This document shows, in pieces, positions 723 through 25,559 of a stretch of DNA of 64,000 bases (the stretch's first letter is position 1; every line of letters starts with the position of its first letter). The position numbers were made by a program, and so were the translations under genes. The notes beneath the pieces were generated by a model. The model made no database searches, was not told the origin of the DNA, and saw only the letters and a list, made by a program, of their open reading frames with translations. Origin of the DNA: Guillardia theta CCMP2712. Taxonomy: Eukaryota > Protista > Cryptophyta. The stretch covers positions 601,548 to 665,547 of the forward strand of contig NW_005434661.1 in the NCBI RefSeq assembly GCF_000315625.1, given 5' to 3'.

Positions 723-1923
723 TCATGATCCTCCTTGAAGATCTCGCAGAATCTTGAGGTTGCCCGTCTTGATTGTTGGCTTCTTCCCCTGCAGCCAAGT
801 CATCGATAGATCCATCCTATCCTCCTCCCCCCTTTCCCTACTCTACCTCCCCTGCTCCTCGTCCTTCCCTGCTCTGCCTCTTCTATCCTCGTTCTGCCCT
901 CGTCATACCATTCCATCCCTCCTAACTCGGTGTTCCCTCCCTTCTCCGGCCTTCCCTCCACTCCTCTCCACTCCCTCCTATACCTTGGGAAACTGCCGAG
1001 GATAATCGTAGACAACTTTCTGTGCCCTGTCCTCTTCGTCTTTCCAAGACGCCTGTCCCTGCCATCATCTCAGCAGCAGGTCGAACTGGGAGATCGATCT
1101 TACCAGGTCGACGTTCGATCCTTCAGCCCCCACCCCCTTGATTGGGCTCAGCGAGTTCTTGTGCTCCGTCAGCTGCAGAGGGAGGGAGAGGAGAAGTTTC
1201 ACCGGCGACTTGGACTCGTCGATCGACCGCCGGTGTACCATGCTCGTGTCTCGGACATACTGCAGGAGAGAGGTGTGAGGAGGTGGGGAGGAGGAGGAGA
1301 AGGAGGAGGAGGAGAGGAGCAGCAGCAGCAGCAGGGGGAGGAGGAAGCGAAAGAGATTGTCAGACCTTGTTCTCGCTCGCCAGGTATGAAGTGACGACTC
1401 CATGTCCATGAGCACCAGGGAAGATGGGAGGAGGAAGGAATTCCTTGGGCACCTGCGCCTGTACGGGGAGTGAGGCGGCAGAGAAGAAGGGATGCACAAC
1501 AAGGGAAAAGACGGGGAGAGAGGAGGGGAGGAGGAGGGGAGGGAAGGAGAAATAGGAGGAGGAGATGGACAAGGAAAGTAGGGAGAGGCAGGGAGAGGGT
1601 CTGCTGCTCACGCTGGGTGGATGAAGCGATCTCTTGGATTCTTGAGCCGCACTCCCACCGTCGTCCTTCTCACCCTCTCGTCCGGTTTGATCCTGCGAAC
1701 GGTCAGCTCGTCCTCGACCTCCCGCATGCGCCAGCACCGAGCAGAGGGGTCAGGGACGATGAGTTTGTCCTTGGCATAGAAGTCTTGCTTCTCCCAATCG
1801 TAGCTCGCCTCCTCCTTCGACGCTTCCTGCACCTTCTCCTTCTCCTGCTTCCCTCCTTGCGCCGGTGCTTGTTTGCCTCCTTGCTTCCCGCTCTGTGCCG
1901 ATGCGCCTGGTGAGCCTGCAGCT

Positions 1924-15862: not shown

Positions 15863-15976
15863 AAAGTGGACGAGGAGAAGTACGGTACGATTGTTGTAAG
15901 AGGACAGAGTAAACGAGGGAAGAAGATCGCAGGCAAGGGAGAAGATGGAGGGAGAGGCTAGGTTGAGAGAACAGTG

Positions 15977-18463
15977 ATGGTAGCACATAAGGATAAGACG
16001 GCGATCCACCGTGGAAGTGGAGAGCGTCAGGGGGCGATGGGTCGCATGAAGCACAATGGTGGCTCCTTGAATGAAAGGCAAGATTTGGAAGGCTCGAAGC
16101 ATGGGGGAATTGGCGGCCAACCAGAGGGCTTGCAAGTCGACATCAAGGTTGAAGATGGGCGCAAGGCAAGGAAGCACAAGAGGGGCTACTCTCCCTCCCC
16201 CAGCGTGAAGAAGATGAAGACAGGAGAGCAGGAGGAAGAGGAGGCTGCAGATCCGATCCTGGACAAACTCGGCAGGAAGCTGTACACCAACCTGATCGCA
16301 GAGATGCGAGTGAAGGAGGAGGAGCTAGAGGGATCACTAGCAAGGGAGGCTGACCTCCACTACAAGCTCTCCGTGAGCACGCGGGAGCTGAAGACGTACA
16401 GGAACATGGCCGACGAGCTGTCGGAGGCCATGGAGTGCAGCATCTGCCTCGAGCGACCGGCCCGGTTCGCGTTCAACCCGTGCGGGCATTGCTTCTGCTG
16501 CCATGAGAGCTGTGGGTCGTTCCAGGTGCGGAAGTGCCCGGAGTGCAGGGTAACAAAGAAGGGAAAGCTACACCTCTACGGAGTCTTCACCGCCATCTCC
16601 TCTGTCCTCGAACGGTTCACCTCGCTACGGGAGTCTGAGGGGACGGCTGAGGAGGAGGGGGAGCCGAAAAAATCGCACGATGCGGTGCGGGTGCGGGTCG
16701 TGGAGTCGGAGATGGAGTCGCTGAGATACGAGCTGGGCGCGTACAAGGAGGAGGCAGGCAGGCTGCATGCAGAGTTGACGCAGGCGGAGGAGCAGGTGCA
16801 GAGCTTGATGCTCCAGCTGGAGCAGAGCAGGTGGGCTGAAGATGACGTGAGGCAGCAGCTGGAGGCAGTGAAGGAGGAGAAGACTTGGTGCGAGAAGGAG
16901 ATGAAGGAAACGAGAAAGACTTTCAATGAGGCGAAGAAGGAGATGGAGGCGGTTGCGAAGCAGGTGGAGATGTGGCGCAAGGAGCACCTGGAGAAGTTTG
17001 AAGAGTGGGAGGTGGAGAGGAGGGAGAGAGAGAAAGCGGACGAGGAGAGGGCAAAGCGGGAAGAGGAGAGGAGGAAGGGGGAGGAAGAGGAAAGGAAGAA
17101 GGAAGAGCAAGAGAGGAAGAAGAAAGAGGAGGAGAGGGAGAAGGAAGAGCAAGAGAGGAAGAAGAAAGAGGAGGAGAGGAAGAAGGAGCAGGTGGAGCTG
17201 ATGAAGGATGTCAAGGGTGAAGTGGACTTGATGAGGGAGGAGCTCAGGCAATGCCATGACGACCTGCAGTCGGAGCTACAGGCGCTGACTCTCAATGACA
17301 CGATCAAGCAAAAATGCGTCAAGTGGCTGAGGGACGAACTGACTACGGCCAACAAGGAGAGGGACGAGGCATGCAAGGAGCTCTCGGAGCGAGTGGAGGC
17401 GGAGAAAAGGTTCAGAGCGCTCCTGGAGGTTGCTTGCAAGGCGGCTGAGAGGGACAGGGAGCGGGTCAAGGAGCTGGAGCACGCGCAAGAGGCGATCATC
17501 ATGTGCATGCAAGACATGGAGAATCGTGTGGAAGGGCTGAAAGTGGTGGGCCTTTGTCTCCCTCCTCCTCTTCTCCTCTTGTTCCTCCTCATCCACCACC
17601 ACCACTTCCTCCTCCTCTTAAATGCCATCCTCTGTCCCTGATATTCTTTTCACCTGCTCCCTCCTGTCCCTTGGCATACTTCTGCCAATCTTCCGCCGCT
17701 GATTTTTCAGCCTCCAACTCTCTATTCGCTTCCTGGCTACCTCGCTGAAATGTACTTGTCTCCCGCAGGTCATCAACGACCTGGACCTCTTCCTCCCTCA
17801 CTACCGCGAAGAGAGCAACAGGAAAGATGCTGCTGCTTCTACCTCCAGCGCTCGAAGGAGAGGAGACAGCTGCATCATCTTCCGCAGCATGGACCCTCGG
17901 CTGCAGATCGGCAGCTCGCAGCAGAGGGCGCGGCGGATAGACCTGAGCACCTACAGGAGCAGGATGACTTCAGCTTTCAGTGCTCAGAAAGCCGATATCC
18001 CTCCTGTCCTCCCACATACTACGTGAAGGAGGGGGAGGGGCAGGGGGAGAGGAGGGGCAGGAGCGCTTGGACATGGGGGGTGAGTGAGAAGGAGGTGTTC
18101 GGGGAAGGCGGGGAGGAGCAGGGGGAGGAGAGGAGAGGGATGTCTTGTGTTTTACAGGAATGCTCGCATGCAGTTGTCTTTATATGTCTGTCTATTGTTT
18201 TATTATATCATCATTCAACTTACACTCCTTCCTCCGTCCTCGTCCTCTTCATTCCCGTCTTTTGTTTCATCCTCCTCGTCGCCTTCCATTCCAGACCCCC
18301 ACCTCCCTCACATCAACCATCCTCCCTCCCTCCCTTGCTCTGTTTACTTCACCATGACAAACAGCATTTCACGCTCCTGAATCACTTCCAGAGAGGGCAA
18401 TCTTCCATCTTCTCTGTTTTCATGCCCTGCCCATCATCTCCTCAGGGTGCGGCTGCTCACTGA
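15977..18463 (+). CDS. RING-finger (C3HC4) long coiled-coil protein (multi-exon; start and end approximate)
   Basis: CSICLERPARFAFNPCGHCFCCHESCGSFQVRKCPECR followed by an E/K/R-rich heptad region in a 555-aa ORF. Further exons lie at ~17769-18021 and ~18366-18463. Confidence 0.75.
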
Positions 18464-18712
18464 CAGCTCGCAGACATGAGCTCTATGAACTTTTGCTGAT
18501 AATTCTTCTAGCTTGCTCCTCCTCTAGGCGACTCCATCTCTGCGATCATCGTCATCATCATCACCGACAACATTGTCTGCGTCCTGTCCATCCTATCCAT
18601 CCGCATCATTACGATCATTGTCGTCGTCATCATCATGGTCTCAATCATGATCATCATCACAGGCTCAGTTATCATCATCTGTGTCTCAATCCTCATATCC
18701 ATCATCATCAAC

Positions 18713-21672
18713 TCAATCACCATCATCATCCACAAGAAGTCCTTCTCTCACCATCAAGACAGAAATCGACTCCTCCTTCAGCATCTCATCGCTGTCAAGG
18801 TCGATGACATGTTCTGCGTGCTCGACTGCAGATCGGATCTCCTCTCCTTCCAACTTGCCCTGGCTGCAGATAACCAGGTCGAACGCTGAGCACGCCACGT
18901 CGCAGAGATCGATGCTCTCGACGCAGGGGAGTTGCTGCGGTGATCCCGACGGGCTCAGGAACGATATGGGAGCAGAGACAAACCCCAAGGGCATCAAGAT
19001 CAGAGCGGCAGCCGCTGCCCTGACTTCCTTCTCCTCTCCGAGCAAGAGAACTTTGAGAGGTTGGGAGGAACTTCTCCTCTGATCGATCACCTTCAAGTCC
19101 AAGAGAGATGTACGAGTGTGAGTTGATCCTTGCTCCCTCCCTCCTCCAGCTCACCTCCTCGTCGAACATCCCCCTCAGGATCCTCCCGACGCTCTGGTGA
19201 CAGGCTGAGATAGACATGCGTCACGACCCAGCAGCACACCTGGGACTTGTACTCGTCGGCATGCAGGTAGAGCTCTCCCCCGCTGCTCATCAGCACTGTG
19301 AAGAAGTTCGCATGCTCCCCCTTGACACAGGCCGGGGTCAAGGCCGAAACATGGTCACTTGCCTTTTTCCACGTCACATCCTCGCTGGTCCATCCCCCCA
19401 TCCCCTGACTCGGTAGCCTCAGCATCTGTTCGAAGGAGGAAACATTTTTCGCCCCGTCCTCTACCCGGAAGACCCCGTCAAGGCCGGCTTCTGTGAAGGC
19501 CCTCCGGACCATTGCTCGTAGCCTCTCGCTCCTCTCACCCTCGGGGATGATACAGAAAGTCCTCGGAGCAATTAGCCGCTGCTGCACCCTCCTCGAGAAA
19601 AGCGACGAGGCCGTCAGTGGTCGACTCTCCCCGTGATCTCCACCTCCTGCACCTCCTCCACCTCCTGTAGCTCCTTCAGATCCTTCAGCTCCTCCATGCG
19701 CCTGTCGGGTGGGTGTGAAGACTGAGTTGTACAGTCTTGACAACTCGCTCGTCCCATCTCCATTGCAGACAACACTCGCACACGTCCGTTCTGTCGCCCT
19801 GAAACTTCTCAGCCCCTCCTGCACCTCCACGACTTGATCGGCCGACGACGAGGTGACGGTCAGTCTGATCACGTCGACCAAACCCTCAAAGGCGTTCGCC
19901 GCCAACTTCAGCGTCATGTAAATCTCGCCTGTCAAATTGTGTCATCCATACTCACCTTTCAAAACCAACTACATCCCATCCCATCCCATCCCGTTCCCTT
20001 CCCTCCCTTCCTCTCCCCTTCCCTTTCCTTCCCTTCCCCTCCCTTCTTATCCTTCCCTTTCCGATTCCCCTTCCCCTTTCAATCTTGCGCCTCCCTCGCT
20101 CCCACCTGCTGTGTAGAATCGTTCATCGGGGTCTATGGTAGAGGAGATTATGCGAGTATGCCGCTTCGACTTCATGATCTTCTCCTGTACCTCAAACGAG
20201 AAGCTCGTTTCCACCTGCCTCTAGACCGTCAACTCCTGCATTCCCTCCCTCCTGCCCCCCAGCTTCTGCTTCTCCCTTTCTCCTCTTCCCACTTCTCCTC
20301 TCCGCTCCACCCTCCCCTCCCCTCCCCCCCCCCTCTCCCACTATTCTCCATCATTCCTCTACTGGCTGTCGGCTGCTTCCCTCCCTGAAATCTGCTTCCT
20401 CACTCTTCAGAACAGTCACTTTCCTCCAGGAATTCTGCGCCCAACAGCACCCCGAGCATCATCAGCTCCGTGTATTCCTCCTCCGAGCCCCGGAAGTTCC
20501 CTCCCTGTGCGATGCTGCGCACAGTCCAGATGATAGGAAGGCGGGAGAGGCGCCTGGACCAGCACAGAGACATCAGAACATCTTAGAGAAGGAGGAGAGG
20601 AGAGAGGTGAAGTGGCAACAAGAAGAGAGGAAAGAGGAGAAGAAGATTGCAGCAGTCGGAAGGGGAAAGCGAATAGAAGAGAACAGAACAGAAAACAAGA
20701 GTAGAAACTCTGCAAGAAGACTTGTATGGAAGAGGAGGACCTGATCTTGGCGAAACTCCTCTCGATCGCGGCTGCCTCGGTTTCATCCAACAGGTCCACA
20801 CGGAACACTAGAGCATCCCCCCCGCTCTCTACAGCAGCGATCTCACGCCATAGCCCTTCCTCTGACTGCATCGGCAGCTTCTCAAGAGGGACGGTGAAAG
20901 AGCCTGCACTTCAGCATCAGCTCCTGGGGGCTTGCAAGGTTCAGACCTAGAGGGATCGGGCATGCTGGGAAATGGACGAGGCGAACGATCAGGAAGTGGA
21001 GATCTTGAGCTGCCCTCTCCCTTGCAATGCTCGCCATGCTCCTGTCCGTCGTGCTCCAATCTATCAACATGAAGACACGAACCACGGGCGCATCAAGGTC
21101 AAACTCTCTTGCGAAGATAAGAATCCACCGTAATCCATGTTGGTGAAGCGATAAGGGATCTTGTCCCAGCGAACGGCTCGCCCTGCTGACGATCTCAACG
21201 AGCTCCTCTTGTCTTCATGCTGAGCATCTCGATTGATATGAATGACGAGGTGCCCTTCTTCCTGCAGGCCTTCTAGGAGCCGGGTACATTCAGGCTTCTC
21301 CCACTCCGGACATGTACACGCCAAGACCTCACTGCGCTCGCACTCGTCGAACTTGTTCATGAAGTTCCTCAACATCTCGACACTCCTCAACTCTCGGTAG
21401 CTTGCATGCAGTCGGGGAGCAACGAGCTCCCCCAAACATCTCTTCCCTGCATCGCGAGCTCCGATCAGAAAGACATGCTTCTTCTGCCTGTCTGTCCCTT
21501 CCCTTGCTTCTTGCATGATAACGGGTCTGCACATCCTGCAGCAGCCCATGCTCTCCTTCCTGCTCATCGTCATCCCAGGTAAGAAGCCGACGCAAGACGA
21601 CTGCATGGCCAACAAACATGTCGCCATGCGAACCACCATTGGGCCGAGATGCGACCGCACGGATACAGCCAT
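18713..21672 (-). CDS. Plastid-leader-bearing shikimate kinase / type I dehydroquinase / shikimate dehydrogenase-like protein (C-terminal three AROM domains), catalytically degenerate
   Basis: Leader ...TCLLAMQSSCVG-FLPG. SK-like HVFLIGARDAGKRCLG. DHQase-I-like GGDALVFRVDLL, LPIIWTVRSIAQGGNF, LGAEFLEVE, TRIISSTID, VDVIRL and ELSRLYNSVFTP. SDH-like RTFCIIP, GMGGWT and KVLLLGEEKEVRAAAAAL. The domain order matches AROM. Confidence 0.7.
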
Positions 21673-21829
21673 TGCCCGACGACTCTTTCCCTTTATTGAC
21701 TGAAAAAGAAAGGCAAACCGTAGAAAACAAGGGAGGCTGAAAGTAAGTCCAACAAACCCGCCTCAATAAAATACTAGGAAACGAAAAAGGCAGCGAAAGC
21801 CGCTACTCCAACCACGCAAGCGACAGTCT

Positions 21830-22492: not shown

Positions 22493-25162
22493 CTACTTCT
22501 CCTCTTCGATATAGTCCCAATGAGCGTGGCCGGTGGACCGAACACTCGGGGCTGCCGGCAAGGTCAGACCGGACGGGAGCGGAGAGTCGCACAACGCCGG
22601 GCTACTCACTGCGGACTATCGTGGAGCCGTTCTCGGAGAAATGAAGCTCGATGGACCTCGTCGAGTTGCTGTCGTTGCGGATGGACACGCGTCGCCGCTG
22701 CTGGCTATTGGCTGAAGCGCAGGATCAGTGCGAGAGGTAAGGATAGAAGCTAGGAGGGAGACAGGCAGGGGGAGGAATATCGAAGGAAAGAGGAGGGGGC
22801 AAGGGAGAGGAAGCAACTTGTCCTCACCACTCTGTGGGTGAATGTAGGTGTCATACGGATCCAAGGTTGCTTCTTCTCCCTCCCTCTGGCATAAGGGGTC
22901 AAACTCAACCTCGACGAGTGAGTTCCAGAGGTTACCAAAGTCAACACAATAGTGTTTCCCCTGCTCGGGATGATGATGATCTCATCATCCGGCGCACTTT
23001 TGTTCGCCTTCCTACAGAAACTGCGGGCAGGCTGTCAACGTTCATGCCTCAGGACTCCGCAGCTTCACCAGACGAAGCAGCAGATCACGATCAAGAGCCC
23101 TCCCAGACCGGCTCCTCCGATCTTGATCCAATACATCCAATCGACGCCTGGTGTGAATGGTTCAGGGGACTTCTCGTCGTTCATCCATTCAAGACATACC
23201 AGATTGAGCTGCAAAGTCCGAGGAAACATATTGCCAAACAAACAAACATCAAAACCCAAACTTGTGACAAGCCCGCAGCCTCCAAGTCACCTGGTTGGTT
23301 GGGATACGAGGGCGATTTGATTACTTCTACTTGATAACCCTAGATGATTGAAGCTTCAGCAAAACCGGTAAAACAGGTCAAATAGACGATCTGCCTGCTT
23401 CAGGAAGCAGGACTTGATGTTGCCGTCTGTCATCTGAACACGGGACACGTCAGGTCCAGACAATCGAATCGCTCAACCGTTACCTGCTCAACGGTCTGAG
23501 CAGCGATGTCCATGTTGGCTACAGAGACTGGATGCAATACAGCCATCAGAATCATCTATGCACCAGCACTACAGTACTCTGCAGGTCGACTTGCGAGTTG
23601 ATGTTGGTCACTGACACTAAGTTAGAACCTCTTTCGCACAGCTGAGAATGCAACCTGGCGGGTTAGGAGCTATCACTGTCACCAAAGTGATATTCTGGGG
23701 ATCCACTCCAGATGAACAGCTGGCTGCCCACCGGATCCTAATCGCATCATGACATGTCAGGACCGGATGAGAAAAGGAGCATTCTCAATCCTTACAATTG
23801 CCGATCATTTGACGACAACGATCCTGGAAGAATTGGATCACAAGAGCACAGAGACTTGCAAAACTTTTGAGGACCTGGAGTCTGCTGCATTCCAACAGAG
23901 AAGGATATCACAACATTTGTGCTTGATCCCTGGGGTTGGTTTCCTTTCCGAGACAAACGTCACCACATAAATCAATAGCTCAGAGCAATCTCTGCTACCG
24001 CTTGGAGCATAACTGTAAGTTCCAGGTCCAACGCAAGGACAAGCAGAGCAGGTTGAAGGCGAACCCTACGAATCCTTCTTCTTAAAACAAGCGTGCGATC
24101 CCATACAAGTTCACCAGGATCGTCGCTTCAATCCATCCTCCGTAGAAATTGACCAAGGTGTACATGCCATAACGGCCTTGAACGCCGCAGTCCTGGGTGT
24201 TACTGGGAAGTTCTGATCCCTTGCTGAGCACCCCTGTTAGAGATTTCAGCATCGGAAGCGAGCGAGGGGAAAGGTCAACCTACGACCCATGGCACAGAGT
24301 TAACGAAGATAATGGCAGGTCCCCCAGAGTCACCATTACAACTGTCTTTCCCAGCAATGCCCCCCGTGCAAACAACGTGATTGAAGTCGATAGCACCGCG
24401 CGAGTAAGACCAAGGGTTTGCACTGATACAGTCTTGCTGGGATGCTATATGCAAATCTACTTGCATCAGGTAGGAGGGTATCTGCTTGTTGTTGTTGACG
24501 ACTCCCCACCCTGCAAGAGTGCAAGCGTCTCCTGCAGAAACCTGCAATACGATCAACGGCCTCATGAGAAGGATCAGGATACGAACATTGAGGCTTCCAC
24601 TCAGCCCGTTGACCTTGGCATACTGCGGGACAATCGCGTCCGAGTCAAGCTCGATCAGAGCAATATCGTCGTGGTCCTGATCCATACTTGGCGTATAACA
24701 TGGATGGGGGATGTATCTTACAGCTGAAACGTACTTGCAGTCTACACTGTTGATATCTACACAATTGTACATGATCTTGGTGCTCGCTGTGCCTGTGACG
24801 CTGACGTAACCATCACTGTTGCTGTTCAGCAGACAGTGAGCTGCTGTGAGTAGCCATCGAGGACTGATCAACTGCCCTGAGCACAGGATGCCAGCTCCAC
24901 CCAACATCGTGATCCTTGCTTCCCACGGAATCTGCGAGAAACTGGACTGCACGCCTCCGATGATTCGCAACCTTTCCCTTCCCATGTGTGCTGCGACTTG
25001 GTCCTTCCCACCCAGCGCATTAGGGTGTACGTTGTTCTGTTGCAGTTGCGAAACTCCTACTGGTGTCGCATGAATGAAAGATGAAAAGAATAGAAGGAGA
25101 GAGAGGTAGAGAGATATCCTCGTGTAGGCCGTAGCCGTGGAAACACAGTCAAAACTCTTCAT
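22493..25162 (-). CDS. Type I membrane-anchored trypsin-like (S1A) serine protease (multi-exon)
   Basis: Signal peptide ISLYLSLLLFFSSFIHA, activation site R-IIGG, and triad motifs LTAAHC, DDIALIEL and GDSGGP (GKDSC, S1 Asp). TM segment WIKIGGAGLGGLLIVICCFVW at ~23065-23140. The probable last exon reads PSVRSTGHAHWDYIEEEK*. Confidence 0.85.
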
Positions 25163-25559
25163 CTCTCTTGCATGGCAGTGGGGTGCCTGATCAAGTGGCG
25201 GCCTGATCAAAATCGTCCAATGTCTGACGGCAAGGCGTTGAATCTGTCTATCTTCGAGTTATATCGGAGGTTGCAGTTGTCTCTTCCTTTGTATCTGGGT
25301 CTCCTTTCCTTACTTTCCTGGCTATTCCTATCTTTGCTGCAAAGCTTATATCTTTCCTTAACTCACAAACCCTACGACGAGAACCTACGCATAATAAAGA
25401 CTGAAGTGTCGTCCCAACAAACCCGCAGCATTTCCATGTGATCATGGCCCTTCTTCACCGCCAGTCCGCCTGCCATATCCTCTTCGCCAGCATTCCCATG
25501 CCCTCCCCCGCATTGTCCCCAAGTAATCTTGCTGTTGAAATCTTTACGCCGTGCAACTC

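Follow-up and report, generated by a model that had tools for sequence, protein, structure and literature searches.

We describe a gene of the cryptophyte alga Guillardia theta CCMP2712 that encodes a relative of the C-terminal half of AROM, the pentafunctional protein of the shikimate pathway. Judged by alignment with active AROMs, the residues needed for catalysis are gone in all three of its domains. The gene occupies the minus strand of a 64,000-nucleotide stretch of DNA (the window: NCBI RefSeq assembly GCF_000315625.1, contig NW_005434661.1, positions 601,548 to 665,547 of the forward strand), which corresponds to G000:C13:601548-665547 in the genome assembly that we searched (87.1 Mb, 669 contigs). 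Its product comprises 727 amino acids (aa) in nine exons. The gene is expressed and kept under purifying selection and is not a decaying pseudogene. The explanation that we favor, at a probability of roughly 0.6, is that this protein is an expressed and selected AROM-derived triple pseudoenzyme that acts as a non-catalytic binder. A preliminary description, made from the letters of the DNA, had already read the locus as a plastid-targeted triple pseudoenzyme. The motifs on which that reading was built are all found on the minus strand: SSCVG followed by F (aa 25-30), GARDAGKR, DALVFRVD, IISSTID, VDVIRL, TVRSIAQGG, LSRLYNSVFTP and GEEKEV.

The structure of the gene was established from transcript data. 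A single 2339-nt transcript contig (run X1, depth 77) joins all nine exons and covers every junction between them. With runs aligned to 18600-21800, this contig falls on the minus strand as eight pieces separated by seven skips. The remainder of the contig measures 206 nt, and its leading 30-mer places uniquely at 18510-18539, which identifies the ninth exon. The joint across intron 6 was also observed in a run from a second study (X2), the pieces of which end precisely at exon borders, and run X9 contains the unspliced DNA form of the gene. Joined in this way, the exons translate as one open frame of 727 codons across eight introns, beginning with the ATG at 21672 and ending with the stop codon at 18485-18483 (coding sequence 21672-18483). 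Seven introns have GT..AG ends, and intron 4 (20423-20215) is readable only as GA..AG. The exons are listed below, with borders given after the small shifts permitted by repeated letters at the joints.

Exon 1, 21129..21677, minus strand: start codon at 21672, leader, then shikimate-kinase-like domain (P-loop at aa 71-78, GARDAGKR); the transcript covers 21677-21129.
Exon 2, 20947..21060, minus strand: linker between the kinase-like and dehydroquinase-like domains; joints 21129/21060 and 20946/20902, with GT..AG ends after a 1-nt shift.
Exon 3, 20741..20903, minus strand: start of the dehydroquinase-like barrel, with DALVFRVDLL, in which Arg is kept and the Glu of ExRVD is replaced by Val.
Exon 4, 20424..20553, minus strand: the best conserved piece, carrying PIIWTVRSIAQGG.
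Exon 5, 20106..20214, minus strand: IISSTID at the SxH site of active enzymes, with Ile in place of the catalytic His; joint 20423/20213 in the transcript.
Exon 6, 19240..19928, minus strand: end of the barrel (VDVIRL, LSRLYN), Gly-rich linker and dehydrogenase-like N-domain.
Exon 7, 19155..19193, minus strand: small exon; joints 19240/19193 (X1, X2) and 19151/19086 (X1).
Exon 8, 18752..19090, minus strand: degenerate Rossmann-like nucleotide-binding half, with GEEKEV at the GAGGTA site of AROM.
Exon 9, 18334..18539, minus strand: last 18 codons (RWSRLEEEQARRIISKSS), stop codon at 18485-18483, then 3' untranslated region (UTR); 30-nt transcript end joined from 18752.

The peptide encoded by exon 9 aligns with the C-terminal ERWTGRKARR of AROM, and therefore lends independent support to the spliced gene model. 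The transcript also revises the preliminary gene model. The frame is intact as proposed, and the exon set was incomplete: exons 2 and 7 had been missed, and the end of exon 4 had been read into the intron. The stop codon placed at 18713 and the last 12 residues in front of it belong to intron 8, since the mRNA is spliced from 18752 to 18539. With regard to intron 4 (window 20215-20423), the join keeps the frame and restores an AROM-like motif, EFLEVETSFS, which matches EFVDVESCWS of AROM; the basis for this join is the one X1 transcript contig. Loose transcript ends at 19810, 20607 and 21691 were set aside, as they probably stem from foreign contigs with common short repeats. The sequences hanging from the ends at 19810 and 21691 were looked for in the window and not found (the end at 20607 was not searched).

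The search for an intact AROM elsewhere in the genome returned one pentafunctional gene on another contig (G000:C17:431278-432756), which is 100% identical to GUITHDRAFT_67756 and comprises dehydroquinate (DHQ) synthase, 5-enolpyruvylshikimate-3-phosphate (EPSP) synthase, shikimate kinase, type I dehydroquinase and shikimate dehydrogenase domains. For the comparisons that follow, the joined spliced protein was used for translation, alignment, local profile search, local BLAST and tree building, and database searches and folds were run exon by exon. Aligned by MAFFT, the protein and the AROM of the same genome remain collinear all the way from the P-loop to the RW motif at the C-terminus, and they agree at 179 of 642 aligned positions (28%). 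When this AROM was compared with the window by tblastn, three exons were recovered in the right order, one for the kinase (E 2e-6) and two for the dehydroquinase (E 2e-12 and E 5e-4); the better of the latter two, exon 4, shares 56% identity over 48 residues. A profile built from 24 AROM C-terminal halves (A1, to which the residue numbers below refer) scored 145 bits against the joined protein in a local hidden Markov model search, a match that includes exon 3. By hhalign against the same profile, the kinase exon matched at E 2.2e-6 and exon 6, which runs from the end of the dehydroquinase into the dehydrogenase N-domain, at E 1.3e-6 (probability 90.6%). The whole dehydrogenase region aligned locally with A1 end to end (255 columns, E 4.2e-5, probability 70%).

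General databases recognized less of the protein. Among the exon translations, Pfam found DHquinase_I (PF01487) on exon 4 (28.4 bits against a cut-off of 22.2, and 24.3 bits in another scan) and weakly on exon 3 (E 0.1); the SKI and Shikimate_dh families gave no Pfam match. A sequence search of the PDB with exon 4 returned the AROM chains 5swv, 7u5s and 7tbv at E 2e-4 to 6e-4, ranked below spurious matches to designed armadillo repeats; the same search with exon 6 and a word-index homologue search with exon 1 gave no match. In the atlas feature search, the nearest named clusters to the N part of the dehydrogenase-like domain carry PF08501 (0.83-0.84), which is to be read as a lead only, and exon 8 retrieved just weak Rossmann-like CoA-binding clusters (0.76). 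The AlphaFold2 model of exon 8, computed without an alignment, was unusable (predicted local distance difference test, pLDDT, 39). Taken together, the alignments make homology to AROM firm for the kinase-like and dehydroquinase-like domains and moderate for the dehydrogenase-like domain. The order kinase-dehydroquinase-dehydrogenase that had been assigned from motifs is thus borne out by the collinear alignment and by the AROM-profile matches, which extend to all three domains, even though Pfam alone recognized DHquinase_I only.

Shikimate kinases handle Mg-ATP and shikimate by way of the motifs GxxGxGK[ST] (Walker A), DxD, FR and GGG. Active type I dehydroquinases depend on a Schiff-base lysine and a general-base histidine, and AroE-type dehydrogenases on SxS, a catalytic lysine and NTD as substrate residues and on a GAGGTA loop for NADP. 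For none of these three enzymes does the protein carry the features of an active form, as a comparison restricted to columns invariant in 24 AROMs makes clear. In the P-loop of the kinase-like domain (GARDAGKR), G15 is replaced by Asp and the residue following K18 is Arg instead of Thr. D35 and D37 of the DxD motif are lost, GGG has become TCP, and the shikimate-binding segment with F60-R61 is deleted altogether (23-26 residues; 26 columns in hhalign). The dehydroquinase-like domain has exchanged E216 for Val, H308 for Ile and the Schiff-base lysine K337 for Arg; S306 and H308 are both invariant in the 24 AROMs. This domain keeps R218, R250, Q254, G256, R379 and N382, that is, the three arginines of FRVD, TVRS and LSR, the QGG loop and the Asn of LSRxxN. 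The dehydrogenase-like domain lacks S433 and S435 of SxS, and it has DEY at the NTD site and GEEKEV at that of GAGGTA. The Lys of TWKK may align with the catalytic lysine of the dehydrogenase; it is not kept in the corresponding protein of the cryptophyte Hanusia phi (LLRN). The absence of catalytic signatures from all three domains, which the preliminary description had noted, is confirmed by this comparison.

We examined the conservation of the gene with the help of two relatives. A phmmer search with exon 6 against 1.8 billion representative proteins returned a single true relative, the Hanusia phi protein P0001, and one low-complexity match besides. The Hanusia phi orthologue is a transcript-derived sequence of 239 aa (EukProt EP00960; no contig is recorded for it) with 52% identity and the same Lys-to-Arg change. 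Identity is spread unevenly: 49 of 65 positions agree in the barrel part, 3 of 20 in the Gly-rich linker and 63 of 125 in the N part of the dehydrogenase-like domain. Conserved domains joined by a variable linker are the pattern expected for folded domains. The second relative is a metagenome contig (L028; ENA ERZ930064, 968 nt) with 91% DNA identity over a span that starts at the end of exon 6 and reaches into the 3' UTR (window 19299-18382), which by its similarity probably comes from Guillardia or a near relative. Splice sites, stop codon and GEEKEV are kept in this contig, no exon contains an indel, and the indels that do occur are confined to intron 8 and the UTR. Exon 7 is conserved there, with one change in 43 nt. 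Over 492 coding nt, the Nei-Gojobori method gives a nonsynonymous divergence (dN) of 0.059 and a synonymous divergence (dS) of 0.178, hence an omega of 0.33 (binomial p 0.003); for exon 8 taken separately, omega is 0.38. A decaying pseudogene, which had been named as the outcome that would undo the proposal, is rejected on account of the open frame, the pattern of conservation with Hanusia and the omega of 0.33; the transcript that had been called for is present, and so is an orthologue in Hanusia phi. Within intron 8, the metagenome contig shows two 3-nt indels in a GAT/ATG-rich repeat.

The comparison with AROMs of diverse organisms bears on the origin of the gene. All 25 proteins from four cryptophyte AROM clusters, one of which includes Geminigera cryophila, score 139-164 bits against the protein, whereas 115 other AROMs, drawn from fungi, oomycetes, euglenids and further groups, reach 101 bits at best and have a median of 69. 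Scores so much higher against cryptophyte AROMs fit a duplication of the C-terminal half of AROM within the cryptophyte lineage, which would be the simplest reading. The gene is a nuclear gene present in single copy in G. theta; a genome search found no further copy. A duplication within cryptophytes would also make the protein independent of the fungal repressors QutR, GaaX and TanX; a separate origin is most likely by this reasoning, which draws on the AROM scores and not on QutR sequences. In a maximum-likelihood (ML) tree of 35 sequences, the branch of the protein measures 9.4 substitutions per site, which is too long for a placement to be read from the tree. Constraining the protein to group with the cryptophyte AROMs lowers the log-likelihood by only 1.0 unit, and such a clade is neither rejected (approximately unbiased test, p-AU 0.275) nor proven. 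The independent evolution claimed in the preliminary description is fitted by the score gap. No second copy of the DHQ synthase or of the EPSP synthase was found in the genome, and hence no QutA-like copy of the N-terminal half of AROM.

Two side observations concern the AROMs themselves. The genome's own AROM is free of introns across the part that was examined, from EPSP synthase to dehydrogenase (a 1046-aa open frame), and the inactive copy has eight introns there. A protein labelled as part of a metagenome-assembled genome (MAG) of a 'Promethearchaeia archaeon' (P0129, NCBI MGB1594577.1) falls into the 90%-identity cluster of P0005, which holds cryptophyte-like AROMs; the MAG contig is probably algal contamination.

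The first ~65 residues of the protein have no counterpart in AROM. Charged residues at the beginning are followed by a short hydrophobic core (MATCLLAM) and by SSCVG, with which a signal-peptide-like part ends at residue 29; F30 comes next, and then a transit-peptide-like stretch of ~35 residues in which Ser, Thr, Arg, Lys, Met and Cys are abundant. Known cryptophyte plastid leaders include SVEG|F and TSEG|F ends after Met-rich cores, and an aromatic residue at +1 marks stromal and not periplastidial proteins (PMC12136025). Bipartite leaders of stroma-targeted cryptophyte proteins combine a signal peptide, cleavage in accordance with the -3/-1 rule, an aromatic +1 residue and a transit-peptide-like stretch. 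By eye, the leader shows this pattern and resembles the listed examples, which is a matter of resemblance and not of a prediction score. Plastid targeting is plausible from these features, and we would give about even odds that the leader routes the protein via the endoplasmic reticulum (ER) into the complex plastid. The genuine AROMs contrast with this: the full-length Geminigera protein begins directly at the DHQ synthase domain, and the corresponding exon of the G. theta AROM opens with MEAVPVGD, 13 codons downstream of an in-frame stop. As to other enzymes of the pathway, the genome holds one chorismate synthase gene, for which the first exon was looked for and not found; a class II 3-deoxy-D-arabino-heptulosonate-7-phosphate (DAHP) synthase was not found in the genome, and class I was not searched.

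How may such a protein work? On the favored reading of a non-catalytic binder, the damage to the active sites makes it very probable that the protein acts by binding and not by catalysis. Tentatively, and with the odds somewhat against it, the dehydroquinase-like barrel could be the functional core and could hold a carboxylated polyol-type ligand without turnover, because no other part is as well conserved and because the substrate-holding arginines and QGG are retained in it while the Schiff-base Lys is changed to Arg and the His to Ile. The role of a scaffold or a partner-binding surface would then fall to the kinase-like and dehydrogenase-like domains with their ruined nucleotide sites. A more specific version, in which cryptophytes independently made a plastid ligand-sensing regulator whose barrel binds a hydroxy acid (maybe not a shikimate intermediate) and whose dead domains control a plastid process, seems doubtful to us. 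Several observations weigh against the picture of a conserved plastid binder. Exon 8 alone gave no meaningful match to A1 by hhalign, and its per-site substitution rate relative to the metagenome contig equals that of the introns. To these are added the long branch and undecided placement in the ML tree and the shortness of the hydrophobic core of the leader. In the libraries searched, relatives outside Guillardia were limited to Hanusia phi and the metagenome contig, and the role may be narrow or dispensable. Finally, the genuine AROM appears, from its start, to be without a leader, which would leave pathway steps 2-6 in the cytosol. With a leaderless AROM, dehydroquinate and shikimate would be cytosolic products, and a plastid copy would reside away from its possible ligands, which weakens the case for shikimate sensing in the plastid.

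This last point bears directly on the idea of a QutR-like sensor that reads shikimate or quinate intermediates and regulates a partner, both within the plastid stroma. The domain architecture shared with the fungal AROM-derived repressors, the retained substrate-holding arginines of the dehydroquinase and the leader with F at +1 all speak for it. Still, we regard this sensor as unlikely, since the AROMs of G. theta and Geminigera begin at the DHQ synthase domain and steps 2-6 look cytosolic, no second DHQ-synthase-like or EPSP-synthase-like gene is there to act as QutA, neither of the neighbors that could be identified, a RING-finger protein and a trypsin-like protease, is an activator, and the kinase-like domain has lost the segment that binds shikimate, as the dehydrogenase-like domain has lost its substrate residues. 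For the shikimate-pathway sensing inside the plastid that the preliminary description had inferred, we found no evidence: AROM seems leaderless, no QutA-like copy was found and no activator was recognized among the seven largest open reading frames nearby. A pure scaffold or protein-binding factor without any small-molecule ligand, partly paralleling plant SKL1, would account for the damage in all three active sites and for selection on the Rossmann-like exon that has no nucleotide motif (omega 0.38), and plant SKL1 and SKL2 provide examples of non-enzymatic plastid roles for shikimate-kinase duplicates (PMC2593004, PMC12203367). The retention of R218, R250, R379 and QGG, together with the conservation of the barrel (75% versus 50% with Hanusia), is most easily explained by a ligand pocket, although the kept barrel residues could also reflect folding constraints; on balance we hold a scaffold without ligand to be rather improbable, if slightly less so than the QutR-like sensor. 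A relic, still transcribed yet devoid of function and slowly decaying after the duplication, would agree with the extreme divergence from every AROM (branch length 9.4), with per-site change in exon 8 as fast as in introns and with the narrow distribution. It is very hard to reconcile with a 727-codon frame that stays open across eight introns, with an omega of 0.33 that is significantly below 1, with a Hanusia orthologue in which the domains are conserved and the linker varies, and with splice sites and a stop codon that are conserved while indels are limited to intron and UTR, so that we consider it highly improbable.

The surroundings of the gene and one further locus deserve mention. On the plus strand at 15974-17638 lies a RING-finger protein (PF13920) with a long Glu/Lys-rich coiled coil, and on the minus strand at 24278-25210 a trypsin-like serine protease (PF00089, E 3e-28). 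Immediately upstream of the gene, at window 21703-21800, the read depth is 154-294, compared with about 5-77 over the gene, and contigs run on into sequence that the window does not contain; this segment is probably a repeat or part of another abundant transcript. Adjacent A>G differences at 21786 and 21787 occur in the RNA run X13 and in X1 and X2 (the RNA status of the latter two is a guess), and not in X9. A second match to the shikimate-kinase family was found at G000:C14:494254-494424 (locus L005, open reading frame 1495-1683, minus strand; PF01202, E 5.6e-8). This exon carries GMDGSSKE and FNTNEI in place of the kinase motifs GxxGxGK[ST] and FxDxD, and may by its motifs be part of a further gene for an inactive shikimate-kinase-like protein, similar to the SKL proteins of plants.

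To our knowledge, the inactive proteins derived from AROM that have been known so far are fungal repressors, which act on the transcription of catabolic pathways. A further example from an alga would show the AROM multi-enzyme half to have been recruited repeatedly for non-catalytic work. If the plastid sensor reading were true, it would mean that the QutR principle was invented a second time, by convergence, in a different compartment and a different eukaryotic supergroup. In any event, with a plastid-type leader on the copy while the real AROM seems cytosolic, the gene is a defined candidate for studying regulation or assembly within a four-membrane plastid. It also holds a warning for pathway reconstruction, as domain-level annotation would count the gene as a second set of shikimate enzymes.

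Among known systems, AROM itself (GUITHDRAFT_67756; solved structures 6hqv and 7u5s) is closest, with its last three domains, their order and their collinearity in common with the protein. The protein differs from AROM in the absence of the DHQ synthase and EPSP synthase domains, the replaced catalytic residues, the ~65-residue leader, the eight introns and an identity of 28%. Plant SKL1, a shikimate-kinase duplicate of the plastid, has no kinase activity and is required for chloroplast biogenesis (PMC2593004). Like the protein, SKL1 and SKL2 are duplicates of a shikimate-pathway enzyme that have lost activity, and the SKLs work in the plastid (PMC2593004, PMC12203367). Unlike the protein, they consist of a single kinase-like domain derived from the plant plastid kinase, without a dehydroquinase or dehydrogenase part. 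Bacterial regulators of the BzdR type reuse the shikimate-kinase fold for ligand sensing (PMC3602430); they combine a DNA-binding fusion with a working ligand site, whereas the kinase-like domain of the protein has lost its substrate-binding segment.

A further parallel is found in fungi, where AROM has given rise to three-domain proteins, namely QutR/QA-1S, GaaX, TanX and a fourth paralogue, each encoded next to a Zn2Cys6 activator (PMC10512348). The activator-repressor module that characterizes this family is not seen at the Guillardia locus: no activator was recognized among the seven largest neighboring open reading frames, four of which have no Pfam match. The fungal proteins act on nuclear transcription, while the protein described here is distinguished by its leader and its resemblance to cryptophyte AROMs. 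Both are stand-alone AROM-derived combinations of kinase, dehydroquinase and dehydrogenase, and Pfam misses some of the domains in this protein as it does in some of the fungal ones (PMC10512348). The working hypothesis for the fungal repressors is that of an inactive protein which still recognizes the inducer (PMC10512348), and by analogy the protein of G. theta may work like this family.

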